Origin: Scyliorhinus canicula
Taxonomy: Eukaryota
Length of the DNA stretch: 64,000 nt
Reading direction: 5' to 3'
Assembly (NCBI RefSeq): GCF_902713615.1
Contig: NC_052154.1
Location: forward strand, 80,827,072 to 80,891,071
Below the pieces are notes generated by a model, which was not told where the DNA came from, made no database searches, and saw only the letters and a list, made by a program, of their open reading frames with translations. A program made the translations under genes and the position numbers. Shown piece after piece: positions 1,058 through 60,430 of this stretch. Numbering within the stretch: the stretch's first letter is position 1; each line of letters begins with the position of its first letter.

Positions 1058-1118
1058 ATGTTGTCGCGTGTGACCCCTGTGTTCATATTCCTGTTTCTCC
1101 CGAGGATCATTTCAACAG
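1058..1118 (+). CDS. Gene 1 exon 1, signal peptide MLSRVTPVFIFLFLPRIIST(G)
   Basis: ATG at 1058, hydrophobic core, phase-1 donor CAG|GTATCT at 1119. Confidence 0.8.
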
Positions 1119-4100
1119 GTATCTGGATATTCTCTACCCTAGATGTCTTATTAAAAAATAAATATTTCGGAGTTCTCACGGCAATTGAACCAAATATAGT
1201 TCGTCCGTCAAAATCTCTTTTGCATTTCCATGCATTATTATGTTCTAAAGTCTCTAGTTTCTCATTGAATACAATTAATTAATAAAAACCTTAAATATAT
1301 TTGATAACAGGCGCTCCAGCAACTTCGATCAGCGTGTCTCAAAGTCCCAAACAGGTATCTATATTAAGGGGGACAAACATCACCTTCTACTGCATAATCC
1401 CACTTTCTCATGATAATGTCGGGGTCGAAGTGCGTTGGTGGAAACAAGGTGAGAATAAATATCTCGCAAATGGAGTCGATGGAAGAAAACGATTTGATCT
1501 CAAAAGCAAAGGAGGTGGTTTATTTGAGCTGCGAAACGCTACTCTCCAGGACTCAGGAACCTATCACTGCGGAGTGATCCGTGACGGAAAATATAGTGGA
1601 AATGGGACAGGATCCAGTTTAACTGTTTGGGGTAAGTGAGCGGAATGGCGGGGAACATCAGACACTCTATGGTGTCATGTTCTTTTGTACCGCATTTGAT
1701 GTTATAAAACATGGTGCACAACGTCAAGTTATGCAGCAGAACGTGATATTTAATTCGCTGTGTTATTCCAAACTGCTGGAAATACTGAGCAATTCAGGGA
1801 ATGTCTGTGGAGAGGGAGACAATGTTAAAGCCTCAGGCCTGTGACCTTTTCAGTGGTATATTACCGAATTCATTCAAAAGGCAATGTTTACATCAGATTT
1901 AATAGTTTGTGGGTGCTCCACCATAGACACCCCAGCCAGAGGAACCAACCTCGCCGTGTCTACCCTGGCAATCTTGTACATTCCAAAGAAATCACACCTC
2001 CGATTCTTCGAAATTCCTCACTCTCCACTTGTGGAAGCTTCCAGAAATTACTATAACTTTGCTCTTCTTATCAGTAAGAAGTCTTACAATACCAGGTTAA
2101 AGTCCAACAGGTTTGATAGGACTTTAACCTGGTGTTGTAAGACTTCTTACTGTGCTCACCCCAGTCCAACGCCGGCATCTCCACATCATGGCTTCTTATC
2201 AGTGTCAGACAGGTTGTTTGCTTCTCTCTGGGGGATACTGCTGACGGACCTTTTGTTACTCACAGAATGGGAAAGGAATGCGGATACCATTCTCCTCTCA
2301 ATCCTTACGCGTAACGTCTCTCCACTGACCTGATTTTCCACATTTTCTGTTCGCAGTTGCACCAACACCGTTAAAGATTCTCCTGAAGCCTCTCGCAAGT
2401 AAGCCATCTACGTCTCTGACTCTTGTGTGTCAAACTGCTGCGTTTTACCCGGATGATTTGACCCTCCTTTGGTATAAAGATGGCACCAATATCACAGCTG
2501 AGATGAATCCAATTAAACAGCGGAACAAGGAAGGACTCTACGAAGTTTCCAGTTCTTTGGAGGAGCCGCAGCCTGTGCGGGACGACGCTGTTTACATCTG
2601 TTTGGTAACTCACATCTCCCTCCCGACTCCCGCCATTGCCATCCACACTGTTACCAACTCCTGCCCAGGTATGAGGCCAGCAGATCAATAATTGAGTTTA
2701 GAAGTTAGTAAAAATCTAAAAAGGATATTTCTTACAGATTACTGACATCAATAATCATAAAGGTGGTTTTAAACCAAAGTACTGGAAATATAAAATCATA
2801 GGGAAAATGTAACCGTTTAATGTAAAATATTACTGACTCAAACCTGTTGTCAAATCGAACTAATGTACCACTATCCTTCTGCCTGTTGTAGCTTGGCAGG
2901 TTTCAAAGTGTTAAAAAGACAAAAGCATCACGCCAATTATACAATTATTTTACATATCCTATTCATTATTGAATGCTCATATGTGACGACTTCTCAAAGT
3001 GAGTTTATTTTTTCTACCGTCAGTTTTCTTCACATGAGCTGCAGAACTAAGAATAACAGTTTCTTTATTTGGCCCCACTGTGAATGGGTCGGCGTTAGCC
3101 TTATGGGCAGGCCGTAATGCCTCTGCGTTATCCAGCAGGTTGGAGAGGTAGTGCGTTTGAGATATTTCATTATATTAACAAATAACCTTGAGTTGGTTTC
3201 CGTTCCGTATTCAGGTACGGTCTTGCTTTAGTTAATTATCTGCACAACAGGCAATAGGCGTTTGCCTATTGATAGCATGGTAGCACATTGGTTAGCACAG
3301 TTGCTTCGCAGCTCCAGGGTCCAAAGTTCGATTCCCGACTTGGATCAGTGTCTGTGTTCCGCGTGGGTTTCCTCCGAGTGCTCCGGTTTCCTCCCATAGT
3401 CCAAAGATGTGCAGGTTAGGTGGATTGGCCATAGTAAATTTCCCTTAGTGTCCAAAAAGGTTAGGTGGAGTTATGGGGATAGGGTGGAGGTAGGATGCCG
3501 TTTCCAAGTGCCGGTGCAGACTCAATGGGCCGAATGGCCACCTTCTGCACTACAGATTATATAATACTATGATAGAATTAGTGCGGTCCATACTTTTAAC
3601 AATGGCGAGTCACTTTTTAAAATTACTCCGACTTCATTAAATAATAGTGTAAGAGCAAAAGATTGATCAAGTACAAGAATACGTTTTTCGCTCCATCTAA
3701 ATGTACTCAAAGGGAATTTTAATTCTAAAACGCCAATGTTTGGAACACCTCAATTGGCACTCTCCATCGAAGATTATTCTGATCTTGTGCCATCCTTTGT
3801 GAGAAGACAGTTAGAAGTCTTGGAACACCAGGTTAAAGTCCAACAGGTTTATTTGGAATCACTAACTTTCGGCGTGTAGCTCCTTCATCAGATCATCACT
3901 CACCTGAGGAAGGAGCTGAGCTCCGAAAGCTGGAGATTCGAAACAAACCTGTTGGACTTTAACCTGGTGTTGTAAGACTTCTTACTGTGCCCATCCTAGT
4001 CTAACGCTGGCATCTCCACATTATGAGAATCTGTTAGTTTGACTTCGTATCGAATGCGATAAGCTACAGACACTTTGAAATAACGCTGTCATCCAGATAT

Positions 4101-6727
4101 ATCACCCAGTTGTGGAAAACATGAGCAGCAGATGAACTAGCAAGTTAATTCGAGGTCTCTTTTTCGGCAGAAAAACGAAATAAATCAGAACTCGAAATAA
4201 TTTTACTTTTGCAGAAGCTGATGGTAAATATCATTACATCTGGATTTCTGGATGTGCGGTGGGTGGATTGGCTTTTCTGACATTAATGATCATCATTGGG
4301 ACGAGATTCTGCTTGAAGAATAAAGGTAGGGGTTACTTTAATCATTTTATTTCAACATGAATATTCAAGAGGACGGCGAGATCGTGCTCGGCGGCACTTT
4401 CTGCATAAGAAAACGCGGTTGATGCAATAAAAACCGAAATCGTGAGGTTCAAATGGACCTTATTTCAAAATCTTTTCATGTAGGAATTACCACAAAATTA
4501 AAATATAAAGAATCTGTTTGTATATTACCGAGGGTAATATCCACATAATGGGATATAACAATTGTTGTCATTGTCCATTCCCCAGCCGATTTGCACTCCT
4601 AGAAGTGACTTCGTGGATTCAGTTTTTTAAGAAAGTTCAGAAAATTTGAGCCCCCGAAGATGTGAGGATAAGAAGGCTACTTGTTCCAGCCAGAAGAGCA
4701 AAATGATTATTGCAAAATCCAAACTTTTGTTCAGCGTTCCGAGGAAGGGTAACTCGTTTGGTGCAAATGAAAGTTTCTTCTTGATACCTTTATTCTAGAG
4801 TCTCCCCACAAAATTCATAAAATTATTTTTTGTTTTCCGCTATTCAATGTTCAGCCTCTAAAGTTACATATATGGTACTTTGTGCGTACGGCACCATAGT
4901 ACCTATGTTTCATGCACGAGTAATTCAAAGGTGTGGGTTAATAGTTCAGAGAAAATGGGGAAGACTTTAATTAACTTAAAAACATATTCAAATCTTTCAT
5001 CAGCAAAAGACAATTAATCTGAGGGCTGTCACTAAATACCAAGTAAGTGATTAATATCCTTAGCGATTGATACGCGAATGTTCCACGTCGTCTTACCTAT
5101 GTGTGACTCCAGTCCTTCACAAATGTGTTCAATTCCGAAATCGCCTCTGAAGTGGTCACTCAAGTCGTTTAGTGTTTCCAGCTAATGGTAGCTATAGGTG
5201 ACAATAAATATGTGCTTGCAGCTCGAAGCTCCTGAGAATGAATGAAGCAAAATAGCAGTTCGATCTTTTTCTACACTCTTAGTATTCTCATTTATTTCCA
5301 GAAAGAAAGGACAAGCCGCCTCCTTGCAGGCTAAGGGGTCAAATTTATTCCGCGTGTCGACATAACACGCGGATAATCAAAAAGCTCTCTGAAGTTTGTT
5401 GGACAAACATTGGAGTTTTATCATTCGTGATGAACATTGGCTCCTCTATTCAATGGTCCGGTCGACTAGAGCAGCGGACAGTTTGATTGTTCTCTCGTAT
5501 CTCGTACCACACTGTCTTGTCTGTATAGTTCAATATCCGACATTGAACATTGCTGTTCTGCCTTAAATGGACATACTTTGCGTTCTCTCAGCCAAATCTT
5601 TGGTCTCTCTCAGTTGCTCCCTCAGTTAGTTCAATGTAATCCATGGAACTGGTTTTTATTTAATCCCGGTTGTCGCATTGACCTTCCGTGTGTGTGGCAT
5701 CGTTTTTGCGCTTTTCGTGTGAGATTTTCTTCGTGTGTTTCTGTCTGTGTTTCTTTTAAAAATAAATTTAGAGTACCCAATTCTTTTTCTTCCCCCAATT
5801 TTTCCAATCTGTGAGTTTCTGTATGTGTGCGAGTGTTTCTGTAAGTGCATGTGTGTCAAAACTTACTCAGATTCTATAATTACCTTTGAAAGCACAAACT
5901 TGGAGAATGACTATATCATAAGAATTGAAAATAATTAAGCTGCGTTACTTTCCAGGTAAACAAGACAGTATAACAATCGTGAAGCCTCATGACGAGCTGG
6001 TGAGTTCATGTTATTGTGTATATATATTGTTATAATGGGAATACTTCGTCACAACCTATTTAGCTACAGCATGTATCTCTAATTGATATGTACTTCGTCA
6101 CAACCTATTTAGCTGTAAACATCCATCTCTTATTACTGTGTACTTCGTTGCAACGATAAATATTTAACGATAATATAAAGCCATAAATATTTCTGTCAAA
6201 TTGATGTAATATTAAGATCGTATTTTGAAAATAATTTGGTGCTTTGTGGGCTATTGCTCAAGGCAGGTGATGAAGGAAATTGATCGCGTCAGTAAGGTAC
6301 GGCTGTATAATAATCATAAGGTTGTTTGTGGGACCTTATGTTACACGTTTAGAATGCTGAAATTGACTCTTGTCTGAATGACACTATTGGATGAAAATCG
6401 GCAGGATGAAATGCCAGTTGCAATTGACAATTTACTTACCGGACCTAACGTCGACACGTCTTTAAATATATTCATGGCGCTTTCCGCATTTTATATACAG
6501 CCCATGTCCCATTTATGTTCAGTGTTTAATCAGAAATCTGAAAACTGATGTTGCCAATAAATTAACCAGATCACGAAATATTTTCGTTCCGTCAGGCGCA
6601 GAGAGCTGACGACAAGCTTGTGACATATGCTGCAGTGGATTTGAAAACATCCACTAAAACGCCTAGATATAAATGTGAAGAAGAGGTGACAGCCTACGCT
6701 CAGGTGGGTCTGGGACGTAAAGAATAG
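1058..6727 (+). CDS. Gene 1: non-rearranging VJ-C1 IgSF inhibitory receptor (NKp30/SIRP/PRARP-like architecture), 6 exons, 326 aa; exons 1058-1118, 1311-1631, 2357-2668, 4215-4325, 5956-5999, 6596-6727
   Basis: All introns are GT-AG with compatible phases (1,1,1,1,0). Exon lengths 61+321+312+111+44+132=981 nt give an open frame. Domains: signal peptide, V, C1, TM, ITIM/ITSM tail. Confidence 0.88.
1311..1631 (+). CDS. Gene 1 exon 2, V-set Ig domain with J-like G strand
   Basis: Acceptor AACAG|, B-strand Cys (TFYC), WWKQ, DSGTYHC, NGTGSSLTV; donor G|GTAAGT at 1632. Confidence 0.95.
2073..2189. mobile_element. Penelope-type fold-back mini-element (ribozyme segment deleted), TSD CTTCTTATCAGT
   Basis: Inverted repeat AGTAAGAAGTCTTACA..GTTAAAGTCC / GGACTTTAAC..TGTAAGACTTCTTACT; TSD at 2064-2075 and 2192-2203. 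Confidence 0.8.
2357..2668 (+). CDS. Gene 1 exon 3, C1-set Ig domain plus stalk Cys
   Basis: Acceptor TTCGCAG|, LVCQTAAFYPDDLTLLWYKDG...YICLVTHISL (C1 motifs CxxxxFYP, WxKDG, YxCxVxH), ends NSCPG; donor CAG|GTATGA. Confidence 0.95.
3271..3575 (+). mobile_element. tRNA-derived HE1/V-type SINE
   Basis: A/B-box-like head, GCGTGGGTTTCCTCC..CCGGTTTCCTCCC core, LINE-like tail GGGCCGAATGGCC. Confidence 0.85.
3813..4022. mobile_element. Penelope-type fold-back mini-element with degenerate hammerhead motifs
   Basis: Same consensus as 27588-27799; + strand TCAC-CTGAGGA-AGGAGCTGAGCTCC-GAAAGCTG lacks an NUH cleavage triplet. Confidence 0.8.
4215..4325 (+). CDS. Gene 1 exon 4, transmembrane (EADGKYHYIWISGCAVGGLAFLTLMIIIGTRFCLKNK)
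   Basis: Acceptor TTTTACTTTTGCAG|, 111 nt phase 1-1, hydrophobic stretch; aligns with gene 2 TM exon (YIWISGCA vs YLRIFGCA); donor AAG|GTAGGG. Confidence 0.88.
5956..5999 (+). CDS. Gene 1 exon 5, short cytoplasmic exon (GKQDSITIVKPHDEL)
   Basis: Acceptor CTTTCCAG|, donor CTG|GTGAGT; 44 nt converts phase 1 to phase 0, as the last exon requires. Confidence 0.72.
6042..6150. repeat. About 50-bp tandem repeat (about 2.2 copies) in gene 1 intron 5
   Basis: TACTTCGTCACAACCTATTTAGCT at 6042 and 6091, partial copy at 6141. Confidence 0.7.
6596..6727 (+). CDS. Gene 1 exon 6, cytoplasmic ITIM (VTYAAV) and ITSM (TAYAQV), stop TAG
   Basis: Acceptor TTTTCGTTCCGTCAG|; translation AQRADDKLVTYAAVDLKTSTKTPRYKCEEEVTAYAQVGLGRKE*. 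Confidence 0.85.
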   Translation, partial: AQRADDKLVTYAAVDLKTSTKTPRYKCEEEVTAYAQVGLGRKE

Positions 6728-8004
6728 AAAAATAGAATACCTGTGAACAGCCAACAATAATGTAAAAGCAGACATTTTGACCTTTCTGTGACTTTGACTG
6801 TGTGTCGCCTGGTCCGCATGGAAGGGTGTTTGTAATAATAATATTTATTAATAAGAATTTTTATGATTGTCAGAAGTAGACACACATGAACACTGCAATA
6901 GTTATTGTGAAAATCCCCTAGTCGCCACATTCCGGCACCTTTTCGGGTACAGGGAGGGAGAATTCAGAATGTCCAAATTACATAACAAGCACGTCTTTCG
7001 GGATTTGCATTGCTATGACTGACTTCTTACGAGCTAATGACAGGAGAGTCAGAGCAGGCTACGATCGTTCATTCAAGCATATGCAGGGAGAGCTGGCCAA
7101 CCAGTATCTGATCAGAACTCTGATGTTTACAGAGAAACTGCACATTTTTACACCGCGCTGCACGTACACAGATATGGTTTAAATATCGATCTGACATTGT
7201 ATGTAGGCTTTAGCAAAAACAGACACATCTTGTATTAGTTATACAATTACAAGTACACCCTCTTGCAGGGGCTCCTAGCTTATCTCGGTATGACTACCGC
7301 CGCTAACTCTATCTGGTACTAAGAAAACAGTGCTTTCTACATGACTCCAGGACTACTTTATTGCCAAAGATGTCAGCTAATGCAGTCCTTGTGAGGTGCT
7401 AAGCGCACCTGGAGAGTCTGCTGACGCGTCTTTAAGCTTGACGAAAGTCAATTGTTGTTAAAATGCACGGTACCACCCTTTGCAGCAAATAAATATGCTG
7501 ACTCTCTTTGTAACAAAGAGATATGTGACCCTTTCTACTATTTTCTTATTGATGCGTTACCTTACTATGTACTCATATTAAAACCTCAACCTTCATTATC
7601 TATTCCCCCTAATAGTATATTGTTCTAATGATGCTGACTTGAACTTTGAACTGGTACAGAAGGCCAATCTACGATGTATTTAAACATTGTTTTTTCAGAT
7701 TAAACAAGGGAAAGCCTGGACAAAGTAACGCATATGGCTTTCGAACTGTCTATTTTTGACACAATGAGACAATGCAGAAATAACTAAAGAAGCACATAAT
7801 ATGGAGAGCTACAGCCGAAAACCCAAAGCGAGCAACAAAGGAGACTTACAGAGTAGCAGCACCCAAATGAAGTCACCATCTTGGGTGCAGAAAACAGTTA
7901 TTGCCGTATATGTCCCCCCCATCTCTATCAATTTCACTGAAAATGAAATCTGGCCGCTGGAAAAGAGCCGGAGATCCAATACGACAGTTGACTGCTTAAG
8001 TAAC

Positions 8005-11650: not shown

Positions 11651-11841
11651 AAAACCTTACTCTTCAGTATCATCTGCATCAAAAGCAGGGTTCGATCTCT
11701 GCTTTTTACCAAAGGTGAAATGGGTAGGTTGGAAGATTGAATTTTACCTTTACTGAGACGCTGCATTTCGTTCTATTGAAGAGAGTAGAAATGTTAGAGC
11801 TCACAAGCTAAAGCTCGAAAACTACCCAAAACAAAACATGG

Positions 11842-27071: not shown

Positions 27072-27126
27072 ATGGCAATTAGGGTTGTGCTTCAGAAAGC
27101 ACAGCTCGTAGGGATTATCTTCATTG
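27072..27126 (+). CDS. Gene 2 leader exon MAIRVVLQKAQLVGIIFI(V)
   Basis: 55 nt, phase 1, donor TTG|GTATTT; a homologous 55-nt exon is present in gene 3 (59281-59335). Confidence 0.75.
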
Positions 27127-30100: not shown

Positions 30101-33100
30101 GATGTGACTACAGATGACACCCTCCAGAATTCACAGCTCCATATCTGAAAGTTATATCAATCTTCCAGATCGTGACAGCACCTCGTTCTCATCTTATTTA
30201 CGGATCTTTGGATGCGCAGGGTTCGCACTGATGTTTTTGCTGCTGGTGACTTACTGTATAATGTTATTCATACGGAGCAGCTATGAAGGTAAGATATCAC
30301 GCTCTAATGTAATTAAAATATAAACCAACATTAACAAACAGCCGCTAGTCAGCAGCAAGAGAAGACCACGATGAACTCAGTTTTCTGTTGGCGCTGGTAC
30401 AATATGAAACTAACCTTGCTGGGAACATAAAAACATGACTAAACGTTTCGATAGGTATGGAAAGAGAAAACAGATTGTTTAAAACTAATGTAGGCCCCTT
30501 ACAGTCAGAAACGGGGGGATTCTTATCGGAGAACAAAGAAATGGTTGACGAATTAAATTCGTGCTTTGCTTCTGTCTACACAAAGGAAGGCATGAATTAT
30601 GTACTGGAGTTTTGAGTAACACAATTTCAGTGAGGAGCTGAAGGAAATTTGTATTAGCAGAGAAATGGTTTAGTGGAAATTCATGGGATTGAAGGCGGAT
30701 AAATCTCCAGGACTTGATAATCCTCATCCCAAAGTAGTTAAGAAAGTGGCCGGAGAAAAAGTACATCCATTGGTGATCATTTTCAAAAATTCCTTGCACT
30801 CTGGAGTGGTTTCTACAGATTGGAAGGTAGCTAATAAACCCAGCTATTCAAAAAGGGAAGTAGAGAGAAAACAGGGAACTATAGACCAGTGAACCTACGG
30901 TCGGTAATAAGAAAGAGTCAATTATCAAGGATTTAATCGCACAGTATTTGTAACGCAGTAGTATAATCGGACAAAGTCAGCCTGGATTTATGAAAGGGAA
31001 ATCATGCGTGACAAATCTTCTAGAATTCTTTGAAGATGTAACTCATAAAAATGACCAAGGAGAACTGGTCGATATGGTTTACTTAGATTTTTAGAAGGCT
31101 TTCGAATAGATCTCAAAGCAGATTACTATGTAAAGTTAAAGCACATGGGATTGCAGGTAGTATGAGATGGATAGAAAGCTGGCCAGTAGACGACAAGCAA
31201 AACGTTTTCTGATTGACAGGCAGTGACTAGTGGAATCTCGCAGGGATCTGTGCTAGGACCCCAACTGTTCACATTAAATATTAATTATTTGGACGAGGGG
31301 ACTAAATGTATTAACTCCAAACTTGCAGATGATACAAATTTGGGTGGGAAAGGGAGCTGTGAGGAGGATGAAGAGATGTTTCAGCGGGATTTGGACAGGT
31401 TTGGCGAATTGGCATATGCATGGCAGATGTTGTATGTTGGAAGCAAAAATATGAAGTCATATTATTATTTGAATGGGTGTAAATTGAGAGAGGTGATACT
31501 CAGCGAGAGCTTGGTGTCCTCGTGCATCAGTCACTGAAAGTAAACAGGCAGGAGGTAAAGAATACATATGGTGTGTTGGTCTTCATAGCGCGAGGACTTG
31601 AGTATAGGCTAAGGGATGTTTTACTGCAATTGCATAGGGCATTGCTGAGGCCACAGCTGGAGTATTGTGTGCAATTTTGGTGGTCTTATCAGAGGAAGGA
31701 TGGAGGGAGTGAAGCGAAGGTTTACCAGGCTGATTCACAGGATGGCAACACTTTTATATGAGAAGAGACTAGGATTGTATTCATTGGAGTTCAGAAGAGT
31801 GAGAGGAGATTGCATAGAGACTTGTAAAATGTTAACAGGATGAGACAGGATAGATTCGGAAAGAATGGTCCCGATGGTGGGGGAGTTCGGAACTAGTGGT
31901 CATAGTTTGAACATTCGGGGGAAACCTTTTAGGACTAAGGTGAGGGGGGATTTCTTCACCCAGAGAGTTGTAAATCTGTGGAATTCGCTACCACAGATAG
32001 TAGCTCAGGCCAAAACGTTGTGTAGTTTCAAGAAGGAATTCGATATAGCTCTTGGCGCTAACGGAATCAATGAGAATGGGGCGAAGAGGATCAGTAAATT
32101 GAAATTTCTGATCAGCCATGATCATAATGAATAGCGGACCAGGCTAGAAGATCCAATATACCTCCTCCAGATTCTATTTTCTATGTATGTTTCTATGTAT
32201 GTTGTTGGATATTAATGTAGGTCTGAGACTGTTTACACTATTTAGTTTAGATTGGCAAGACCTTAAACATATATTGTGTTTCCAGAACACCACCTTCCAA
32301 CGCACCCTGATCCGAACACCTCCTCTCTGGTATCCAAGAGAGTAAATATGCTAGAAGAATTTTTCCAAAAATTGTTTTCTCCACCATTTAGGCAGAAATT
32401 TCACTTTTTTTTATTGCAATGTAGAATTTTGCCTTTGTATTTTCACATCCCTTGGCGTAAACATGGGTTGTGGAATTTGATGATGCTTTCTTGCCTTCAC
32501 TAGACTCTAAACTGATATTCGATTTACTTGCTGAATCATATTGTGTATTATTGACAATGACGTTTTGAATTCAATGTTTTAGTAAGCAGACAGAGAAAAT
32601 GTGTAGCAAACAATTGTGGCAAATCTGTATGTTAATGATATTCATTCCCCTGATCTCTTGATTTTGTGTTGAGCTGAGAACATTTTAAATCTATGTTGGA
32701 TCAGGGAAACGCTTTTGCATGATTAATATCAATGTAAATTTGTATGTTTATTTGGCTTACCCATATCAAACTGGGACATCAATAAAAAACACTTCCAAAT
32801 CAATATTGGCGCCGAATTCGGTCCACAATCCACCATGCAGGAACTATGTACTCCAAGTCGTCTCAGAATCAGCGGTAGAGTAGCTTTTTTTAAAAAGAGG
32901 ACCAGTATCACAATCTGGGGACGTCCCTAGCATAGGTCTGCACTATGAGATCGCATTGTTTCTGGTTAGAATGGGACGAAATTTGAGCGAGCTCCTTTAT
33001 GCAGAGCTCTAAAAATAGCAGGGAGTAAGCTTTAAAGGCGAAGAGTGGTTTGCCAACTTGGATCCAACTACACTTTTACCATTCGGATTATTTTTTTGCC

Positions 33101-34152
33101 AGACGTATTCGGCCGTCTAGTCTGAGAAGGACAGCACGGTAGCATAGTGGCTAGCACAGTTTATTCACAGCTCCTGGATCCCTGGTTCGATTGCCGGCTT
33201 AGGCCACTGTGCGGAGTCTGCACGTTCTCCCGTGGGTTTCTTCCGGGTGTTCCGGTTTCCTCCCGCAGTCCAAAGATGTGCGGGTTAGGTGGATTGGCCA
33301 TGCTGAATTGCCCTTAGTGTCCAAAGAGATTAAGTGAGGTTACTGGGTTACAAGGATAGGGTGGAAGTGCGGGCTTGGATAGGACTCTTTCCAAGGGCAG
33401 ATGCTGACTCGATGGGCCGAATGGCCTCCTTCAGCACTGTAAATTTTGTGATTCTATGATTCTATGAAGGGGACGTATGACGGCGCAAGCACGACACAGA
33501 CGTTGCCTGCCAGCATTTAGATAGCGAACATTCATCTAAAAGGAAGTACGTAAATAACTCTTGTTTCCTCTCTCTTCTAATTCTCAAGATTGGGATGGGC
33601 TGCGGTCACCACAGCCGCCAGATCCCAACGTTTCTCGGGATTGGTTCCCCCGGGTTTTTCTGACCAATGTGCCGAAGGACCAACCATTTTAGTTGCAATG
33701 ATCTGGACGACAATGATCAAAATTCTAAGTTTCCAGCGCAACGTACATTGCATATAGTGTATTAATGATAATGTTGTCACTATTTCAAATTAAATTGGCA
33801 ACCACTGTCAATTTGGTATAACCTATTTGAAGACACATATTTTGGGGACAGGATATTAGTTCAACGAAATTGCCTGAGTTAATATGATGACTCAGTATGT
33901 AAATACACTAACCTAAAGACGAGTGAAGTATTATGATGACAATACTTCGCTTTATTATGTATTTTGTAGGTAAAGGAAGTTAAGACCTAACTTTGCAAAA
34001 CATCTATTTTACAGACATTGCAAGTCGCATTTGATAACTCGCTCGCTTATGCAGAAGTCGAATTAATTCGTTCTAAGAAAAATGGAAATCCTCGAGGCAA
34101 AGAAAAGAGCACAGAATTCGCAGACATAAGGAATGTACGGAAAGAGAGATAG
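27072..34152 (+). CDS. Gene 2: VJ-C1 IgSF receptor paralog; exons 27072-27126, 27227-27544, 28381-28692, 30169-30288, [short cytoplasmic exon unresolved], 34015-34152
   Basis: GT-AG phase-1 introns link leader, V, C1 and TM. The last exon aligns with gene 1 exon 6 but needs a phase 1->0 connector exon; candidates are 30353-30396, 33521-33549 and 33589-33629. Confidence 0.8.
27227..27544 (+). CDS. Gene 2 V exon with J-like G strand
   Basis: AFEC, WWKLG, DSGVYYC, TGSGSKLVV; acceptor TTTTATAG|, donor G|GTAAGA. Confidence 0.95.
27588..27799. mobile_element. Penelope-type fold-back mini-element with two inverted hammerhead motifs, 13-bp TSD
   Basis: TSD AGTCTGTTATTCA at 27575-27587 and 27800-27812; empty site in the gene 3 paralogous intron. 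Confidence 0.88.
27736..27770 (+). ncRNA. Minimal type I hammerhead ribozyme motif (sense to gene 2; identical antisense copy at 27675-27709)
   Basis: CAC-CTGAAGA-A-GGAGCCGTGCTCC-GAAA-GC-TC-GTG. Confidence 0.62.
28381..28692 (+). CDS. Gene 2 C1 exon plus stalk Cys
   Basis: LLCEMASFHPAGLTITWYKN..YSCLVTHVTL..TCNPG; 312 nt, as in gene 1; acceptor CCACCAG|, donor CAG|GTAGGA. Confidence 0.95.
29874..30040 (+). mobile_element. HE1/V-type SINE (internally deleted)
   Basis: GGGCAGCGCGCTGGCGCAGTGGTTAGC..GGTTCGATCCC..GGGTACTCTAAA. Confidence 0.8.
30169..30288 (+). CDS. Gene 2 TM exon (DRDSTSFSSYLRIFGCAGFALMFLLLVTYCIMLFIRSSYE)
   Basis: Acceptor TCTTCCAG|, donor AAG|GTAAGA, 120 nt phase 1-1, 23-aa hydrophobic segment. 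Confidence 0.9.
30400..32200 (+). mobile_element. CR1 LINE RT region and 3' end (decayed), inside a gene 2 intron
   Basis: KSPGLDNPHPKV, TSGISQGSVLGPQLF, LADDTNLGG, LRPQLEYCVQFW, FFTQRVVNLWNSLP; (TTCTATG)-like tail. Confidence 0.9.
33128..33465 (+). mobile_element. HE1/V-type SINE
   Basis: Full consensus with an (ATTCTATG)n tail. Confidence 0.85.
34015..34152 (+). CDS. Gene 2 terminal exon: ITIM LAYAEV and degenerate ITSM TEFADI
   Basis: Acceptor CTATTTTACAG|; TLQVAFDNSLAYAEVELIRSKKNGNPRGKEKSTEFADIRNVRKER*; motif spacing and RKE end resemble gene 1 exon 6. Confidence 0.75.
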   Translation, partial: TLQVAFDNSLAYAEVELIRSKKNGNPRGKEKSTEFADIRNVRKER

Positions 34153-51100: not shown

Positions 51101-53870
51101 GTCATGTTCCGCCCTCCTTCCCTTATTCGCATGAAGCGTAAATGAGATAATTTCTCCCTGGACCACTGCCTTCAATGCTACCCACAAAATGCCCACCGAC
51201 ACCTCCCCATTCTGATTGAACTCCACATAATCCCGAATCGCCAACTGCACCTCCAGCCCGGCCTCTGCTCTTGTCCCGTACTGAACCGAATATCCAGCCA
51301 GTGGGGTGCAAGGTCCGAGATAACGATCCCCACATACTTTGCTGCTCCGCCCCAACCAAAATCTCCCAACTGACTACAAAGTAATCAATCCTCGAATAAA
51401 CCTTATAGACGTGTGAAAAGAAGGAATACTCCCTTCCCCCTGTGTTCTGAAAGTGCCATGCATCCATCATACCCATCCACTCCACAAACCACGTCCCCAG
51501 CTCTCTTGACAGCCCTACCCTATCCATCGACCTGGGGCACGATCTATTCACCCTCGGTTCTAGGACACAGTTAAAATCTCCTCTCATGTTGAACTGGTAC
51601 GTGGCCAAATCCGGGATCGCTGCCAGCAACCCCCTCATAAAACCCACATCATCCCAATTTGGGGCATTCACATTTACCAACACTACCTGTGCCCTTCCAA
51701 TACCCCACTCACAATCACATATCTCCCACCTGGATCCCTCACCTCCTTCGCACTCACGAATCCCATTTATTTGCTCATTAAAATCGCCACACCCCTCGAT
51801 TTCAAATCAAACCCCAAGTGAAAAATCTGCCCGACCCATCCCTTCCTTAACCTAACCTGGTCCTTCACACGGAGGTGAGTCTCCTGCAAAAAGACAAGCC
51901 CCGCTTTCAAGCTCCTGAGGTGCGCGAACACCCGTGACCTTTTAACTGGCCCATTCAGTCCCCGGACGTCCCACGTTACCAACCTTACAGGAGGCGTGCA
52001 CCTCCAATCCCCTCTACCATCCATCATCTTCCCCACTTAACTCCTGCCCCTTTAATTCCACTCTGTATCTAGCCCATCCCAGATGGCCCCTTTCTTCGCC
52101 CTTGACCATGTTACCTCTCACCCCTTGCCTCGTTGCAGAAACCTCCCCCAGCTTTTCCCTTCCCCCCACCACTTCACTTTTCCCCCCTCCCCCTGGCCAG
52201 CCCTCTTGGTCTTCTCCCCGCACCACCTCACTTCCATTCACCAGCATAACCTGCTGGCATGGCTACCCCTGCCCAAAGGCACATCCTAATGACCCCCCAC
52301 TGCTCAGCTCAAAGAAGAAGGCCTCCTGCTGGCCTTACCCTCCCCCACCCAAACAAGGACTTCTCCTGAACTCCAGGTAGCCTTCTCCAAAAGCAAACAA
52401 ACAGATGTTAAACACAAACAGTCCCATAAAACTGGAGGGGGGGGGGGTGGGAACATCCATGCTCACATAAACTTTTCACCCCTACAACTCCTTACAATCT
52501 CAACATTGAACAGACCCCCCCCCCCCCACCAAAAAAGGCGAATATCCCCCAATCCCTACATCCCACTTCAAACATGCTCCCGACCGTTACATAGTGCCAG
52601 CATCCCGGTTCCCAAGCATTGCCCACTCAGTTCTTCCCCAGTTTATGCTTCTGAATGACGTCTTCGGCTGCTTATGGGGTCTTGAAATAATACTCCCAGC
52701 ATCCAAACGTCACCCATAATTTCGCCAGGTAGAGCACCCAAAACCTGATCTGCCATCAGTACAGCACTGCCTTGACCTTGTTGAAACCTGCCCGCCGTTT
52801 TGCCAACTCAGCTCCGATGTCCTGATAAATCCAGACGTTATTTCCCTCCCAGTCGCAGCTACGCTTCTCCCTGGCCCACTGTAGAATTTTCTCTTTCTCC
52901 ACAAATTTATGGAGTCTGACGATCATTGCCCACGGCGGCTCCCCAGCTCTAGGCTTTTGCATCACAGAGTTATGCGCTCGGTCCACTTCAGGTGCCTTAT
53001 CTAGCATCCGTTCTGCCACCAGTCCCGCCAGCATCCTTGAGACATACCTTGTGGCACTCACACCTTCAACTCCTTCAGACAGGCCCACTATTCGCAGATT
53101 CTGCCTTCTCGTGGCATTCTCCTGCTCCTCCACCCTTGCCCTCAATGTTGTACAGAGGGCTCCTCGGAGCCCCACCTCTGCCTCCAGGGCCACCACACGA
53201 TCGCTGTGGTCCGTGATCACTCCTTCAATTTCCCGAATCTGTGATCCCTGCACCTTCAAACACCTCTCCATCCGCTCCAAAGTACTCTTCAAGGGCCCCA
53301 TAGCTTCTGCAATGGCGTTTGCATGATCCTCATGCACTTCTTTCCTTGATTATAGTAAGAAGTCTTACAACACCAGGTTAAAGTCCAACAGGTTTGTTTC
53401 AAACACGAGCTTTCGGAGCGCAGCTCCTTCCTCAGGCGTTCCGAAAGCTCGTGTTTGAAACAAACCTGTTGGACTTTAACCTGGTGTTGTAAGACTTCTT
53501 AATGTGCTCACCCCAGTCCAACGCCGGCATCTCCACATCATTCCTTGATTATGGAATTCCTCCTTGATTAAATTCATCAGTTCCTGTATCTGGGGCCTTA
53601 CAGCTTGCCCCTCCCCCGCCTGCATGCTGGAAGAGACTGTCTGTGAACTACAAGACTGTTTCAAATTTCCAGCCAAATCTCTCACTATTCTCTGCCGGGT
53701 CCGGTGATCAGAAGACATACCATTCCAGGGGTAAAGTACTCCTCTAACATTCACCTACGCCTTTTCATCAAAATTCCACCCAGATCTGGGTAAAAAGAGC
53801 CCTTTTCTGTGACTTTGAACAGGAACAGCCCTTTATGTGACCAATCACTCCATGGTCACAAGCGGAAGTC
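48135..53870 (-). mobile_element. Full-length decayed L1-clade LINE with 14-bp TSD
   Basis: TSD ACTGTTTAAATACT at 48121-48134 and 53871-53884; ORF1 (RRQNLRIVGLSEGVEG), APE (VTWDVRGL..FLQETH, GDFN, SRIDY), RT (YADDLLL), poly-A end. Confidence 0.95.
53354..53540. mobile_element. Penelope-type fold-back mini-element inside L1 ORF1, 12-bp TSD, hammerhead motif at 53404-53438 (-)
   Basis: TSD TTCCTTGATTAT at 53342-53353 and 53541-53552; minus strand CGC-CTGAGGA-A-GGAGCTGCGCTCC-GAAA-GC-TC-GTG. Confidence 0.88.
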
Positions 53871-54119
53871 ACTGTTTAAATACTTGTAGCAACACGTTCT
53901 ATTCGTTTTTGCATTTTTAGCTAGCTTCCACTCATACTTTAATTATACTCATAATTTCTCCTGATTAACCATTGGTCATTCTGTGCCTTTTTTTCATATT
54001 CTGAGCAATCATCAGACCTGTCACTCATCTTTGTGCAGTTATATGTTTTCCTTATGTTTAATGCTTTCCCTAACTTATTTGGTTAACTACCTCCCTTTAG
54101 ATCCCTGGTAACGGAAACA

Positions 54120-55066
54120 ATGGCGTCCGATCCGATCCCGATGCTTCCCCCGATGCCTCCGCAATTCAAACCGATTCAGCATCGCCTGCACACTGCCCAG
54201 GAGCAGGAAAAGCACGATCCGGTGGTGGCGTATTTCTGTCGCCCGTATGCTATGCAGACTGGAATGAAAATAGATAGAAAACGCCAGAATGCCGCAAGTT
54301 CTTCGTGAAACGTATAGATGAAGTAGAGATTATGAAGAAACAGTTGGGTGACAATGAATAAATATTGCAAGATGTGGTGGGGAATGCCCATGTAGTGAAC
54401 CATGCCTAAAAGATGTTCCTCTATGCGGAAAATGAGGATCAATCAGGAAGATTTCACAAAAACATGATCATGTCATTCTATACCGCCAGCCTGTTACACG
54501 ATGTGTACTGTGTTCGGGGTGCTCACTGAAGAAAATATTCAACACAGGAAATATGCAAAGTGGAACTCAGAATATATCCACAATTGTTTGAAAAATGGTG
54601 AAACCCCCAGTCCGGATCTACAGGGATGGGAGACTACGAAATACTCGCTAACGAGAGGAAAGGGGACTGTTCACTCCCGTAATCGCCAATCTCCAATCTT
54701 CCCCCTGAATCCAAGCCAACGTCAGACCTCTCTAATATACAGGTACCTCCTGGTGATCAACCTCCCATCAAATTTCTGAACCATTCATATCCCTCCTGGC
54801 GCACACGCTCCAGCCAATATTCCAGCAGAGGTGCCAGGCAGCTCAGTGTTGCCGAATACGCCAACAATGCCACAGACCATAACCAATGCTTGTCCCGTCG
54901 TTGTCCAGCGCAAAGCCTCAGGGGGAGGTAGGCCTGACCCCGGAGGATTAAGCCAGGGCTCAGAAGTACTGCAAATACGCCTGCAGCGCCCTACAGCATG
55001 AAGACGTTGGGCAGCTGTGCAGAATCTCCAGAAGGCTCTCAAGTTGCTCACACGGGGACGGAATGA
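54120..55066 (+). pseudogene. VTA1: Processed (intronless) pseudogene of VTA1 (Vps20-associated 1/LIP5)
   Basis: N-terminal LPPMPPQFKPIQH..TAQE..DPVVAYFCR.YAMQTGMKID, KMFLYAENED.SGRFHKNMI.SFYTASLL, YIHNCLKNGETP, C-terminal AQKYCKYA.SALQ.EDV..AVQNLQKALKLLT; no introns; several stops and frameshifts. Confidence 0.92.
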
Positions 55067-55171
55067 GCCCCTTACCTGCAGTGCCCAAATATAACTTGTG
55101 TTCTTTTCACTGTTCCAAAGAAGTAACCAGTCCTTGTCTCCACTCCGCCCTTGCCTAGCAAACGGGACTGT

Positions 55172-55455
55172 TATAGAACAGTACAGCACAGAACAGGCCC
55201 TTCGGCCCTCGATGTTGTGCCGAGCAATGATCACCCTACTTAAACCCATGTAACCCGTATACCCGTAACCCAACAATCCCCCCATTAACCTTACACTACG
55301 GGCAATTTAGCATGGCCAATCCACCTAACCCGCACATCTTTGGACTGTGGGAGGAAACCGGAGCACCTGGAGGAAACCCACACACACACGGGGAGGACGT
55401 GCAGACTCCACACAGACAGTGACCCAGCCGGGAATCGAACCTGGGACCCTGGGAC
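55172..55455 (-). mobile_element. HE1/V-type SINE in the VTA1 retrocopy 3' UTR
   Basis: Reverse complement of the SINE consensus. Confidence 0.8.
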
Positions 55456-57295
55456 CCTGTTTCCCTGTCGGCGTCCTACATACTTTGATATGCAGATCGT
55501 GTTGCATTTTTTCTATCTGAAAGAAAGAAGATGCTGTGGGTGCCAGGTGTGAATATTATTGGCTTGAATTTCATAGCTACGGTATTTTTTAAAGGCACTT
55601 GTGATGGCAACACTAAAGAAATGTGCATCGAGTTCTTAATTCTGCTGCTATTTCAGTGAGGTAGCTGTCCTATATATGGATATTAGAACAATTTGGTGCA
55701 AGATAGCATTCCATTTCATGGCACCCAGGGGGTTAGCTGTGTAATGTCTTACGATCCTACGTATGCTCATTCAACAGTAGAACACAAATTGCACACCAGT
55801 TTTACCCCATTCTCCGTCCCTCTTTCCCTACGAAACCCATTGTGGTCTGGGTGGGTCAAGCTCACAGCCATATATTATGCAATTTGGTTTGACCATTGAG
55901 AATATTTCTCAGGCATCAGGTAATCAACCCATCATGCTCTTTTACATGGACCAAATTGGCCACCTCAGCGAGCAGTGGAAAGTGACAGCATTTCTGAGTT
56001 TCCAGCCCAAGTTCTTCTGTATGCGTATTTGAGGGTGTGGGGGGGGGGGGGGGGGGGGGAGCAGATTTGTGTACAATTGCCGTTGAAGGAAATCTTAAAT
56101 GCTACATGCATACCCTGCCAAATCCCCTGCTGCCAGTAAAGCAGTACCTTCCACTGACTCCCAGTGTCTCCCAAATGAACGCTCTATCCAAAACATCCGA
56201 TCAGAGGACTAATGTAGCCTTTGAGCTAATATAACCAGTTGCCAGAAGAGATGTTCCGCATGCACGGAGAAGTGTAATTAAGCATTATATCTTGTAATAA
56301 ATAATTGTGTATCTGACTGTTGCTCTTTTTTTCTGAGATTTGAGATGAGATAAATTGCATTGTATATTAAGTTTGTGTGTGTGACTGAGGCTAGAATTAC
56401 TCTTCAGAAATTATTTGCAAAGTGGAATAAGCCCACGGCAACATGGAGTCCAAGCGTTGCATAATACGTTTGCCATTCATAATTTTCTTTTTTTGGGCTT
56501 GACAACATAACAACGCTAATCATGAATCATTTTCTTTCTGGAGGAGACTTCAAAAGAAACTAAATATATCAGTGAATGCTGGAATGTGGCGACTAGGGGC
56601 TTTTCACAGTAACTTCATTGAAGCCTACTTGTGACAATAAGTCATTTTCATTTTCATTTCATCAAGTAATCTAATTGCTTTTTCAATGTTGTGGCGCTAA
56701 ATCAGTTGGTATTTGGGTAAAGACGGGAAAGTGACAGATTAAGAAAGTAGTCAGATTGAAGAGTGAATGGTGGTGAATAAAACTAACCTAATCACAATTT
56801 TAAAAGTTGCATCAATCTCGGCATTGCTATAAAACGAAATAGGAAACAACACCTTGCGGGGTGCACAAAGCAGCCGATCATATACCGCCAGTTTTACGCC
56901 ACAGGGATCTTGAATGTGCCGTCCATTTGAAATGTTGTCACATTTCTCGAGAACCTGGTAGATTAGAAAACCGGAAATCCAAGCGCTCTGGAGATAAAAA
57001 TTAAGCTGCGCTATTTTTAATATTGGTGGGTTTTCACCATACTTCGTATACGCTTAATTCCTCCTGTTTGTTGATCCAGTTTTCCAACACGTTCTGTTTC
57101 GGTTAGAAAAGGAGGAAATATAATCCTGCCTAGAAATAAAGTACTACAGTAATAGAAAAGTTACATCTTACCTGGGTTACAATTGGGAACCATATAACTT
57201 GCCATGGCTGGAATCTGAAGAGTCACATGAGAAACCAGGCAGATATACACAGTTCCTCCCCGGGCCGGCTGTGCATCTTCAAAATAGCTCCAAGC

Positions 57296-57510
57296 TGACA
57301 TAGAACATAGAACAGTACAGCACAGAACAGGCCCTTCGGCCCTCAATGTTGTGCCGAGCCATGATAACCCTACTCAAACCCACGTATCCACCCTATACCC
57401 ATAACCCAACAACCCCCCCCCCCCTTAACCTTACTTTTATTAGGACACTACGGGCAATTTAGCATGGCCAATCCACCTAACCCGCACATTTTTGGACTGT
57501 GGGAGGAAAC
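57296..57510 (-). mobile_element. 5'-truncated HE1/V-type SINE inserted in the gene 3 C1 exon
   Basis: Removing 57296-57510 restores a 312-nt exon reading MYEAWSYF (gene 2: MYDAWSYF). Confidence 0.92.
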
Positions 57511-58379
57511 TTCATACATTCCGGCTCTGCTGAGTTGCTTCGTGGTGTTTATTCCAGTCACAATGCTTTCATTATTTTTGTACCAAGTGATAGTCAGACC
57601 AGCCGGGTGAAATGAAGCCATTTCACACACGAGAGTCAAAGAACCAGCGACATTACGTTCAGATACGTGAGGAACAATCTTCACTGGAGTTGGGAGAGCT
57701 GGTGAAAGGTCGAGAAGAAAGTTAATATGTCGCCCATTCTGGAACAGAGTAACATTCAATTCTATGATGGCTCCTTCCCAGTGGAGGGTTATGATTATTT
57801 TGGATCTGCTACAACATACAAAAAACACCATCCACCTGTTTGTTAATGGTTAAATAAACAACAATACGAATCAACCACTCTATATGTTATACTATACTGC
57901 ACAGTTGAATGCAGCTCGGCCTAACGTGTCTGTGACACGTATGCCCGAATTCTAAGGGATCAGACACTAGTTTATTGGTTTGTATTTTCTGTTCTTCAAT
58001 CAATAGCTTTGGTCAGATCCTGAGTGACTAACGCAATAACTTGAATCGCTTGAAATTCTTTCAAACCGATAATGTCATCAATAAAGAACTGAAATGTACT
58101 GAAATTGTCTGGGTTGTCCAAACTCTAATCACTGGCGTTCTTAATTTTCAAATATAACTGTCTCCCAGATGCTAAAGTAACCTGTGAAATGTAACTTTCG
58201 CCTGTTGCTAAATCCCCAAAGACCTACGGAATTCATTCCACGCCCCCGATCCTCGCCCGAGCTCTGCAAATGTTTCCCGACCAGGAATGATCAAATTCGG
58301 TTTGAAGTTGCCTTTGAAGTTGTTTTCCTTCCAAAATAGTGCGGTGCAGATCTTAAGAGTGATCAGGTGTGATTATTAG

Positions 58380-58608
58380 GGGCAGCATGGTGGCGCAGTG
58401 GGTTAGCCCTGTTGCCTCACGGCGCCAAGGTCCCAGGTTCGATCCCGGCTCTGGATCACTCTCCGTGTGGAGTTTGCACATTCTCCCCCTGTTTGCGTGG
58501 ATTTCGCCCCCACAACCCAAAGAAGTGCAAAGGTAGGTCGATTGAACACACTAAATTGCCCCTTAATTGGAAAAAAAATGAATTGGGTACACTAAATTTA
58601 TTTTTAAA
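58380..58608 (+). mobile_element. HE1/V-type SINE in the gene 3 V-C1 intron
   Basis: Full consensus; absent from the gene 2 paralogous intron. Confidence 0.85.
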
Positions 58609-60430
58609 AAGGTGTGATTATTACTTTCCCTGTTTGATATCCGATATCTGTTTAGGTGGATGAATTGGCGAACATGATGAAACATTTGGGTGCCTATGTC
58701 GTGAAGGAAAAATGCATTTGCGAAAACATTTTATATGTCCTTCATTCGCGATCTGACACCGTTTGCAAGACGCAAATGTTAAAGGAACACCCAAGGAAGT
58801 GGGAAAAGTATATTCTTTATTACTTATTTGAATAACCTCTTTACTATACAATTTACTCTCTTTATACAGTTCTTACCACTGACGATGAGCGTTGATCCAC
58901 TTCCATTTGCGGCCCTGTTTCCCTGTGTCACTCCGCAGTGTCACTGAAAACTGATATTCAGGAGTTTGAAGGAGGCTCTTCCGTTCCCAGTGACAAATCG
59001 TTTCCTGCTCTCTGATGCAGGGTGTATCACTTGCTTTTCGCCAAGCTTCCACCAATAATCGTCCGCATCTGAATCGTCTTGGAAACTAAGAAATGTGCAG
59101 TCGAATGCAATATTCGTACCAATGATCGAATAGATATTTTATGGGATCTGGGTCACTTCAAGCAGAGGATGGGTAGCAACTATAGAAGAGAATGAACATC
59201 AATTATAATTATCAAACATTGAGGGCGATTTAGAGAGAGAGAAAAATAAGAGGAAAGACAAAACGAAATATGGAAAATACCAATGCAGGTAATCCCTATT
59301 AACATTACGTTCTGAAACTCAGCCCTCATCGGCATTTCAGCGACGTCACTGGCCAATTGAAATAACTAACAGGAAAGTACTTTCTTCGGGGAAATAAAGC
59401 TGTGGATACCTGATAATAAGTGTTAGACAATGACGTATGAGGGTGCATCCCTGTGACTGGTGCCAATGGCTGAGTTTAAAGAGTGGAATGGAGGCGTATG
59501 CTTCATGTAGATTAGATGCTCATCTCCACGTTAACACAAGGCAGGATTAGAACCAAGTATCTATGGAACGATATCGTTATATTGTATAATTCGTCGTACT
59601 TTAGAATGTTTTATATACCTAGGCGATTTGACACAACGTTCCAAACACAATGCCATATAAATCCTACATTTTAAGTTAATTTCCATTCAAAAATCGCAGT
59701 GTTTAGCGTTGTGGTGGAAAAGTGGAAGGTAAAAAGAAAATGAATCATGAGGAGTGATTATTCATAGCAGCTGGAATATAGTTTGGGTCCAAGTGATTCG
59801 CAGGGCAAGCAACCACTGAGCAGAGATCAGAGAGAACATGTCTAGAATTCAACAAGCTGAAGGTGCAGTAATTAGGTAGGGTTTCTGGTTGGTACATTCT
59901 TTGCAAAGGGGCATAGGGCCCACGGACAGTAATATGATAGCATTAGAAATTAATGGTGTAAGGGACAGAGAGATTGGTGATGAGAACAAAAGCAATTATT
60001 AGGTGAGAAACAATTTCTGTCGGCATGTCTAGGTGTGTGGTAAGTGTTTATCTCTCAGATCTGTGGGCATGTTCAATTCTTGCGATTTTAGACAGTACAG
60101 GCAGCTGAGGAGAAAATTATTCCTTCGCACGAAAGTTAGTTTGGAGGTAATGAAGATCGTTAGTTGTAGTGATGTTTATTACACATGAAAACCGTTGCCA
60201 CTAAAGTAGTTTCGGATTCCACAAAGAAACAGCTGTCTTTGTTTCAGTTTGTACTCTGAAAATTCAGTTGTTTAATAGCATTCATATCTATTGCAATACT
60301 AGGTAGGGGTCAGGTTTATTATCATTGTCTCCTGAAGTAGAGCATCTTTGCTGAAAGTTATGCTCCTCTGCAGAATACATCGCATTGATACTAAAGTAAT
60401 CTAATATCTTCAGTGCTCATATATCTTACA

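Follow-up and report, generated by a model that had tools for sequence, protein, structure and literature searches.

Germline-joined VJ-C1 membrane receptors in the catshark Scyliorhinus canicula: members of a probable multigene paired-receptor family of cartilaginous fish

We analysed a stretch of 64,000 nucleotides from the catshark Scyliorhinus canicula (NCBI RefSeq assembly GCF_902713615.1, contig NC_052154.1, positions 80,827,072 to 80,891,071 of the forward strand), which is referred to here as the window. It is likely that the window contains some of the genes of a larger cluster, which encode type I membrane receptors of germline-joined VJ-C1 layout, and that these genes belong to a chondrichthyan multigene family of paired receptors. 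In such genes, a variable (V) domain and a joining (J)-like strand share one exon, and a C1-set domain follows. Six-frame open reading frames (ORFs) and tblastn with relatives located three sets of immunoglobulin (Ig)-domain exons, two on the forward strand and one on the reverse. A preliminary description of this DNA had taken them as three receptor paralogs; genes 1 and 2 are indeed intact, but gene 3 carries stops, deletions and an insert from a short interspersed element (SINE).

Exons and domains of the window genes

Genes 1 and 2 have intact six-exon ORFs of 326 and 328 amino acids, with AG/GT at all junctions. The exon order in both is a split leader, a V exon including the J-like G strand, a C1-set exon, a stalk and transmembrane exon, a 44-nt cytoplasmic exon and a tail exon with tyrosine motifs, which in part are immunoreceptor tyrosine-based inhibitory or switch motifs (ITIM, ITSM). 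The leader, V, C1 and transmembrane exons end in phase 1. The exons are as follows (relatives are cited by P numbers):

1058..1118, + strand: gene 1 exon 1, split leader; ATG at 1058, phase-1 donor GT at 1119; aligns to the leader of Heterodontus P0019
1311..1631, + strand: gene 1 exon 2, V domain in one exon, with GNGTGSSLTVW as its J-like G strand; Pfam V-set E=6e-10
2357..2668, + strand: gene 1 exon 3, C1-set and start of the stalk with a cysteine (NSCP); Pfam C1-set E=5e-9, splice sites
4215..4325, + strand: gene 1 exon 4, stalk and uncharged transmembrane segment IWISGCAVGGLAFLTLMIIIG; tblastn to the transmembrane regions of P0101, P0107 and P0034, AG/GT
5956..5999, + strand: gene 1 exon 5, 44 nt, cytoplasmic, entered in phase 1 and left in phase 0; found among the in-phase AG..GT intervals, homology
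6596..6727, + strand: gene 1 exon 6, tail with ITIM VTYAAV and ITSM TAYAQV, then stop; aligns to many family tails
27072..27126, + strand: gene 2 exon 1, split leader; identical to RefSeq P0191
27227..27544, + strand: gene 2 exon 2, single-exon VJ domain with VTGSGSKLVVS; Pfam V-set/I-set, identity to P0191
28381..28692, + strand: gene 2 exon 3, C1-set and stalk cysteine (TCNP); Pfam C1-set E=1.5e-10, AF2 pLDDT 93
30169..30288, + strand: gene 2 exon 4, stalk and transmembrane segment with an arginine at the outer boundary, YLRIFGCAGFALMFLLLVTYCIMLFI; identity to P0191
32583..32626, + strand: gene 2 exon 5, 44-nt cytoplasmic exon VSRQRKCVANNCGKS; in-phase AG..GT enumeration, absent from the RefSeq model
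34015..34152, + strand: gene 2 exon 6, tail with ITIM LAYAEV and second motif TEFADI (tyrosine to phenylalanine); match to the P0168 tail

In all three window genes, the V exon runs unbroken from the A strand via the YxC motif to a J-like G strand, which reads NGTGSSLTV in gene 1, TGSGSKLVV in gene 2 and NGSGSTLIV (in longer form ANGSGSTLIVS) in gene 3. Pfam assigned the first exon of each set to V-set (with I-set) and the second to C1-set, above the curated cut-offs; the E values were 6e-10 and 1e-7 for V-set and 5e-9, 1.5e-10 and 1e-7 for C1-set. The leaders are split as in the V genes of Ig and the T-cell receptor (TCR). The window was also scanned for recombination signal sequences (RSS), defined as a heptamer, 12 or 23 bases and a nonamer with at most 3 mismatches. 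The 12- and 23-spacer scans gave one match each, at chance level and far from the V exons, and no RSS was found near a V exon. The exon reading, Pfam and the RSS scans thus confirmed the earlier claim that V domain and J-type G strand share one exon, with no RSS, in all three paralogs.

The C1-set domain with a stalk cysteine, also claimed for the three paralogs, was found by Pfam in each, and all three C1 domains have the YxCxVxH motif and a membrane-proximal cysteine (NSCPE, TCNPD and NCNPG). The cysteine stands as a feature of the window genes but not of the family, as it occurs in only 9 of the 54 family members with a transmembrane region; disulfide dimerisation is therefore not a family trait. 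The window genes fit the general plan of non-rearranging VJ-C1 receptors: split leader, single-exon VJ domain, C1-set domain with YxCxVxH, and phase-1 exons.

A transmembrane exon and a tyrosine-motif tail had been described for genes 1 and 2; both were recovered, and a conserved, previously unlisted 44-nt exon closes the ORFs. Phase 1 at the end of the transmembrane exon does not fit phase 0 at the start of the tail exon, which makes an exon such as this one necessary between them, and the gene 1 model closes only with it. The 44-nt exons were located by listing in-phase AG..GT intervals, and homology bore them out. For gene 1, a weak tblastn match at 5439-5480 was rejected as the missing exon, having no usable splice sites or frame, and an alternative phase-1 acceptor within the tail exon was dropped in favour of the 44-nt model. 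The product of the gene 1 exon, KQDSITIVKPHDE, matches KEEKVTTVNSYDE of P0101. Elsewhere in gene 1, the V domain is 69% identical to that of P0019 (Heterodontus), the transmembrane exon matches the corresponding regions of P0101, P0107 and P0034 with E values down to 6e-9 (tblastn), and the ITIM and ITSM are spaced 23 residues apart.

The gene 2 model agrees at every position from residue 1 to 268 with catshark RefSeq P0191, annotated as "tapasin-related protein-like", and the gene spans agree as well. P0191 omits the 44-nt exon: exon 4 is spliced to exon 6 out of frame, and a stop follows after six residues. The omitted exon has a counterpart, VSRQRKGGANNCGKS, in the S. torazame relative P0192, which also has an ITIM/ITSM tail. 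The gene 2 tail is 60% identical to that of P0168 (E=4e-12), and its second motif, TEFADI, retains the tyrosine in the S. torazame relative (TVYADI). The position of the arginine at the transmembrane boundary (YLR) is arginine or lysine in P0011, P0168 and P0188. Skipping of the 44-nt exon, with junctions 30288/34015 in gene 2 and 4325/6596 in gene 1, ends the protein after 4-6 residues; the tail-less form of P0191 may be a real splice switch or an annotation artefact.

An AlphaFold2 (AF2) model of the V-C1 ectodomain, computed from a 64-row alignment, has two β-sandwich domains (mean local confidence, pLDDT, 93.1; predicted template-modelling score, pTM, 0.83). Foldseek against the PDB ranked antibody light chains first by E value, at 20-26% identity and a TM-score of ~0.4, low because the predicted V-C1 arrangement is extended and not elbowed. 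Against the Swiss-Prot models, the closest matches to the model as a whole were domains 1-2 of SIRPα/β, PD-L1, CD276, B7-H6 and tapasin-related protein (TM-scores 0.64-0.76). When the C1 domain is taken by itself, its matches are MR1 α3, the CH1 and CL domains of Ig and, in UrIg2, the first C domain. Look-alikes in the ESM Atlas are generic V-C1 clusters only. As modelled, the protein is made of antigen-receptor-type V and C1 domains, and its structure assigns no named family.

A multigene family of cartilaginous fish

In an exhaustive HMMER search, the V domain of gene 2 matched 331 cluster representatives at E<=1e-3. Every V-C1 relative that was checked by name is chondrichthyan. They come from a chimaera (Callorhinchus), from sharks (Heptranchias, Heterodontus, Chiloscyllium, Carcharodon, Cetorhinus, Mustelus and Scyliorhinus) and from rays and skates (Mobula, Hemitrygon, Hypanus, Pristis, Amblyraja, Leucoraja and Narcine), and the 150 best V matches included no V-C1 relative from any other group. 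The family is thus expanded, as had been proposed, but it is not confined to sharks. Its automatic names are inconsistent (SIRPα-like, SIRPβ-like, tapasin-related, Igλ-1-like, NCR3LG1-like, CD276, MHC class II β-like, uncharacterised), which bears out the earlier expectation that such genes would be mislabelled.

The V consensus reads ...TFxCxFP...VYWWKxGE...DxRKxF...FQLLNV...DSGVYYC...NGTGSxLxV, and the C1 consensus that follows it reads PPTPLxI...CxTAxFYP...LTWYKNG...GLYExSS...VYTCxVSH. The C1-set domain was found in 63 non-redundant relatives, and in these, as in genes 1 and 2, a single C1 exon lies between the V and transmembrane exons. The 54 members with a transmembrane region include 25 with ITIM/ITSM tails and 16 with a basic residue in the transmembrane region and no ITIM/ITSM motif; a subgroup of the latter combines short tails, 3-19 residues long, with a conserved transmembrane pattern, R...(D/E)H.

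We built a tree of V domains (100 rows, 103 columns), in which all 70 family rows fall in one clade (SH-aLRT 92). Shark P0072 and frog NCR3 form another clade (93), reptile multi-V proteins a third (97), and the SIRP V domain stands on a long separate branch. Neither nesting within shark NKp30 nor nesting within true SIRP was seen: the family has a V clade of its own, and it lies off the chromosome of the major histocompatibility complex (MHC), as set out below. V-only isoforms fall inside the family clade. P0128 and P0180, RefSeq isoforms of the catshark gene LOC119970986 on the 198.8-Mb chromosome, differ by the C1 exon, which can therefore be skipped, and one gene can give V-C1 and V-only (NKp30-like) forms. 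The reptile proteins (lizard and turtle P0131, P0132, P0135, P0062, P0070 and P0109) are receptors with three tandem VJ-type domains and ITIM tails, automatically named 'titin homolog' or 'A33-like'. Their V domains score up to 66 bits against the shark family V profile, above NKp30-type or SIRP V domains, and form their own clade.

The V-C1 family lies on contigs of 193.5 Mb in the white shark, 198.8 Mb in the catshark and 54.0 Mb in the sawfish. The published MHC chromosomes are catshark chromosome 13 (~163.5 Mb), white shark chromosome 19 (~115.8 Mb) and sawfish chromosome 34 (Veríssimo et al. 2023, PMC10751288). By setting the contig sizes against these tables, we infer that the family is off the MHC chromosome in all three species and that the sawfish contig matches no chromosome with the hallmark MHC paralogon in Table S1 of the same paper. 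This size match speaks against a linkage to the MHC, one of the points that the preliminary description had suggested checking.

With regard to signalling, the family appears, from its sequences, to fit the general pattern of paired inhibitory and activating receptors: the genes are clustered, ITIM-bearing forms occur alongside short-tailed forms with a charged transmembrane region, one member is a pseudogene and the V domains are variable. Gene 1, with its uncharged transmembrane segment and its ITIM and ITSM 23 residues apart, would be an inhibitory receptor, judging from the motifs. Its phosphorylated tail may recruit SHP-1/SHP-2 through their tandem SH2 domains, by analogy with PD-1 and SIRPα. 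Gene 2, with one ITIM, a degenerate second motif and a boundary arginine, may signal more weakly or in two modes. If its 44-nt exon were skipped, six residues would replace the ITIM tail, so gene 2 could yield both inhibitory and tail-less forms. Long-tailed ITIM/ITSM forms coexist in the family with short-tailed charged-transmembrane forms, and the V loops vary far more than C1. As in the paired leukocyte receptors (SIRP, KIR, LILR, CHIR and NITR), the ligands may be rapidly evolving self or pathogen molecules. The NK/myeloid-type role put forward in the preliminary description is conjectural, as is any status of these genes as relics of the pre-RAG receptor.

Several points weigh against this reading of the locus. 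The gene 2 arginine lies at the transmembrane boundary rather than in mid-membrane and is glutamine in a Mustelus relative, so the case for an activating role of gene 2 is weak. As the 44-nt exon is missing from the RefSeq model P0191, the evidence for an ITIM-bearing isoform of gene 2 is homology. The support for transcription is the existence of RefSeq models, which is indirect. The order of the V clades is not resolved by the 103 columns, which leave open forks, and the phylogeny is one of V domains. The chromosome assignment compares contig sizes with published gene tables and is not direct synteny.

The pseudogene and other elements of the window

Gene 3 is a pseudogene, of which the following parts were located:

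59281..59335, - strand: gene 3 leader exon; the promoter-leader-V region is 72% identical in nucleotides to that of gene 2
58877..59179, - strand: gene 3 V exon, disabled by two in-frame stops and by 12-nt and 3-nt deletions
57172..57698, - strand: gene 3 C1 exon, split at 57296-57511 by 216 nt of SINE-derived sequence that change the frame

The V stops are TAA at 59141-59139 and TGA at 58943-58941. The 12-nt deletion takes out D-S-G-V of the DxGxYxC motif; the 3-nt deletion is separate. No transmembrane or tail exons were found by tblastn downstream of C1 on the minus strand (50000-57150), a stretch of debris from SINEs and long interspersed elements (LINEs). The second V and C1 of S. torazame P0161 are an intact close relative of gene 3. 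The C1 exons of genes 2 and 3 share 89-93% of their nucleotides, compared with 72% for the promoter-leader-V region; this contrast points to V evolving faster and to C1 being under constraint or subject to gene conversion.

A direct repeat, 99% identical and 1737 bp apart, flanks the leader and V exons of gene 1 (1-300/1738-2037, also 335-420/2072-2157). Given this repeat, the gene 1 leader-V cassette appears to be the final copy in a tandem duplication of very recent date that extends upstream of the window. If so, several near-identical leader-V cassettes stand before one set of C1, transmembrane and tail exons.

The window also abounds in remnants of SINEs, LINEs and DNA transposons. All introns contain SINE copies headed by a tRNA-like segment, and the insert that broke up the gene 3 C1 exon is one such copy. 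The ORF at 21141-21839 matches reverse transcriptase (RVT_1). The remains of a Harbinger/PIF-type DNA transposon, with DDE_Tnp_4 over two ORFs and a Myb/SANT-like ORF, lie at 41867-42810 (+) and 45388-45747 (-), in a GC-rich block between genes 2 and 3 in which the GC content reaches 62%. Two G-rich minisatellites, at 40636-41131 (21/42/63-bp unit, ~21 copies) and 44812-44984 (43-bp unit, 4 copies), generate long spurious ORFs on both strands. The stretches at ~12200-16500 (+) and ~48300-53300 (-) have similar ORF translations in opposite orientation, which suggests a single repeated element present twice, once on either side of the central region; the three ORFs scanned in them gave no Pfam match.

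Relation to known receptor families

In the literature searched, whose coverage was partial, we found no description of a VJ-C1 family of cartilaginous fish with a transmembrane region and ITIMs. Recent papers of the group that would be likeliest to report such a family give only NCR3 and UrIg/UrIg2 as non-rearranging VJ genes of sharks. There is an appreciable chance, somewhat short of even, that the family has already been described under the NCR3 family or another name. We put at about even the chance that it is an undescribed third non-rearranging VJ-C1 lineage of cartilaginous fish beside NCR3 and UrIg/UrIg2. Such a lineage would be membrane-bound, with a single C1 and the layout of a TCR chain; it would be older than the split of chimaeras and elasmobranchs, lie outside the MHC and have diversified into inhibitory and charged-transmembrane forms. 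In it, the choice of isoform (skipping of C1 or of the 44-nt exon) may switch architecture or signalling.

The question matters for studies of the origin of antibodies and TCRs, which need genes with an unsplit VJ exon joined to C1. The two shark lineages in focus so far are NCR3, which has V only and is MHC-linked, and UrIg/UrIg2, with many C domains. The V-C1 family is large, lies apparently outside the MHC and keeps to the plan of one TCR or Ig light chain in its minimal form, with V, C1, stalk and transmembrane region. This layout, the chondrichthyan spread and the apparent non-MHC place make it a new comparison point for V and C1 trees, and the family bears on models that place all early VJ-C1 genes in a proto-MHC. 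It is also a candidate paired inhibitory/activating receptor system for cartilaginous fish, in which few have been characterised, and one coherent family is concealed behind automatic names such as tapasin-related, SIRPα-like, Igλ-like and NCR3LG1-like.

Among the specific alternatives, the one that fares best, although unlikely, is that the window genes are members of the shark NCR3 (NKp30) family and hence known. Kinlein et al. are said to have described in 2021 a divergent NCR3 family of the nurse shark with eight subtypes. In the V-C1 family, V-only isoforms of NKp30-like architecture arise by skipping of the C1 exon (P0128 compared with P0180), one such isoform of a family gene, sawfish P0061, is named 'NCR3-like' by NCBI, and the closest V matches from outside the chondrichthyans include a frog 'NCR3' together with further multi-V proteins of anurans and reptiles. 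However, the true shark match to NKp30 is a different multi-V family, represented by P0072, which has a separate V clade and lies on the MHC chromosome. The P0072 V domain matches human NKp30 with E=1.3e-16 over the full domain, and its top four PDB matches are all NKp30. The V domain of gene 1 had no NKp30 among the matches listed (60 of 83 PDB matches at E<=0.01), the best being amphioxus VJ-C2 (9e-6), TCR Vα (3.5e-5) and VNAR; that of gene 2 matched TCRδ (2e-5) and, over no more than half the domain (residues 52-99), NKp30 (4e-3). With its C1-set domain, its location away from the MHC chromosome and a weak or absent match to NKp30, the V-C1 family departs from NCR3 on each count.

The P0072-type proteins (P0203-P0214) have two to four tandem NKp30-type VJ domains, with PF07654 (C1-set) absent from their Pfam lists, and are linked to MHC class III. 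Their automatic names are 'turtle homolog' and 'uncharacterized'. The genes (LOC119975535 in the catshark; LOC121291130 and LOC121291272 in the white shark) are on contigs of 163,470,629 bp and 115,848,844 bp, respectively, and the same LOC ids are placed on catshark chromosome 13 and white shark chromosome 19, beside NCR3 and C4 (Veríssimo et al. 2023, PMC10751288). There, they stand between RGL-like and C4 and adjoin a gene labelled NCR3, with more NCR3 genes between AIF1 and DDAH2 (PMC10751288). The P0072-type genes are probably part of the published shark NCR3 family.

Slightly less probable again is that the window family is the cartilaginous-fish counterpart (distant co-orthologues) of SIRP. 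SIRPα/β domains 1-2 are among the best structural matches of the whole model (TM-scores 0.70-0.75, 20-24% identity), and the names SIRPα-like and SIRPβ-like are frequent in the family. The likeness extends to a VJ-type V followed by C1-set, ITIM-tailed inhibitory forms with paired short-tailed partners, and the extended V-C1 shape. B7, PD-L1 and tapasin-related protein gave equally good TM-scores, so the structural match to SIRP reflects the general V-C1 shape. Furthermore, the window family has one C1 domain where SIRP has two, and its V is distant: the family V profile gave 24-26 bits to SIRP V, for which one mammalian SIRP-like protein was used, compared with 30-66 bits to NCR3-like and reptile V domains, and SIRP V has the long separate branch in the tree.

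We regard orthology to PRARP, the non-rearranging VJ-C genes first described in chicken and known from other non-mammals too, as improbable. According to Fu et al. in 2019, PRARP reportedly has a VJ-type V, a C domain, a transmembrane region and a signalling tail, which by description is the same general plan of non-rearranging VJ and C. PRARP is, in contrast, a VJ gene 'in the MHC' (PMC10751288), whereas the V-C1 family is off the MHC chromosome, and the 150 best V matches held no V-C1 relative from outside the chondrichthyans. Least probable of all is that the window genes are germline-joined Ig light-chain or TCR genes as known in sharks: light chains are the best Foldseek matches by E value, the V exons have no V-J break and some members are named 'Ig lambda-1 light chain-like', but the genes have transmembrane and ITIM tail exons, the V framework is (Y)WWKxGE and not WYQQ, the family profile gives TCR V domains no more than 13-20 bits, and no RSS footprint lies near the window V exons.

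In comparison with the known systems, the V-C1 family shares with NCR3 a non-rearranging, single-exon VJ-type V domain and the form of a shark multigene family with activating and inhibitory members, and its V-only splice isoforms reproduce the NKp30 architecture. It differs in its C1-set domain, its own V clade, its weak or missing NKp30 match and its position off the MHC chromosome. UrIg and UrIg2 (Flajnik et al. 2023, 2025) are likewise non-rearranging VJ and C1-type genes of elasmobranchs with a split leader. With the C1 domain as the query, UrIg2 ranked near the top of the PDB entries; the whole-chain E was 1e-10, and the stretch that matched best lies in its first C domain. The family profile gave a whole-chain E of 5e-35 to UrIg2, summed over three matched stretches. 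Searches of the PDB with the family V and C1 profiles were set aside as uninformative for family assignment, since the summed scores of multi-domain chains dominate the ranking, and single-domain queries were used instead. UrIg is secreted, has several C domains and is MHC-linked, and UrIg2 has 9-11 C domains and lies in the IgH/TCRαδ complex; the V-C1 family, unlike these, has the order V-C1-transmembrane with ITIM/ITSM tails, is highly multigenic and occurs in chimaera too. Lastly, NITR, KIR, LILR, CHIR and LITR resemble it as clustered, fast-diversifying families with ITIM-tailed and charged-transmembrane members and pseudogenes, and NITR also in its VJ-type V domain. The second domain of the V-C1 family is, by contrast, a true C1-set domain and not I-type or C2, and the family is, as far as searched, restricted to cartilaginous fish.

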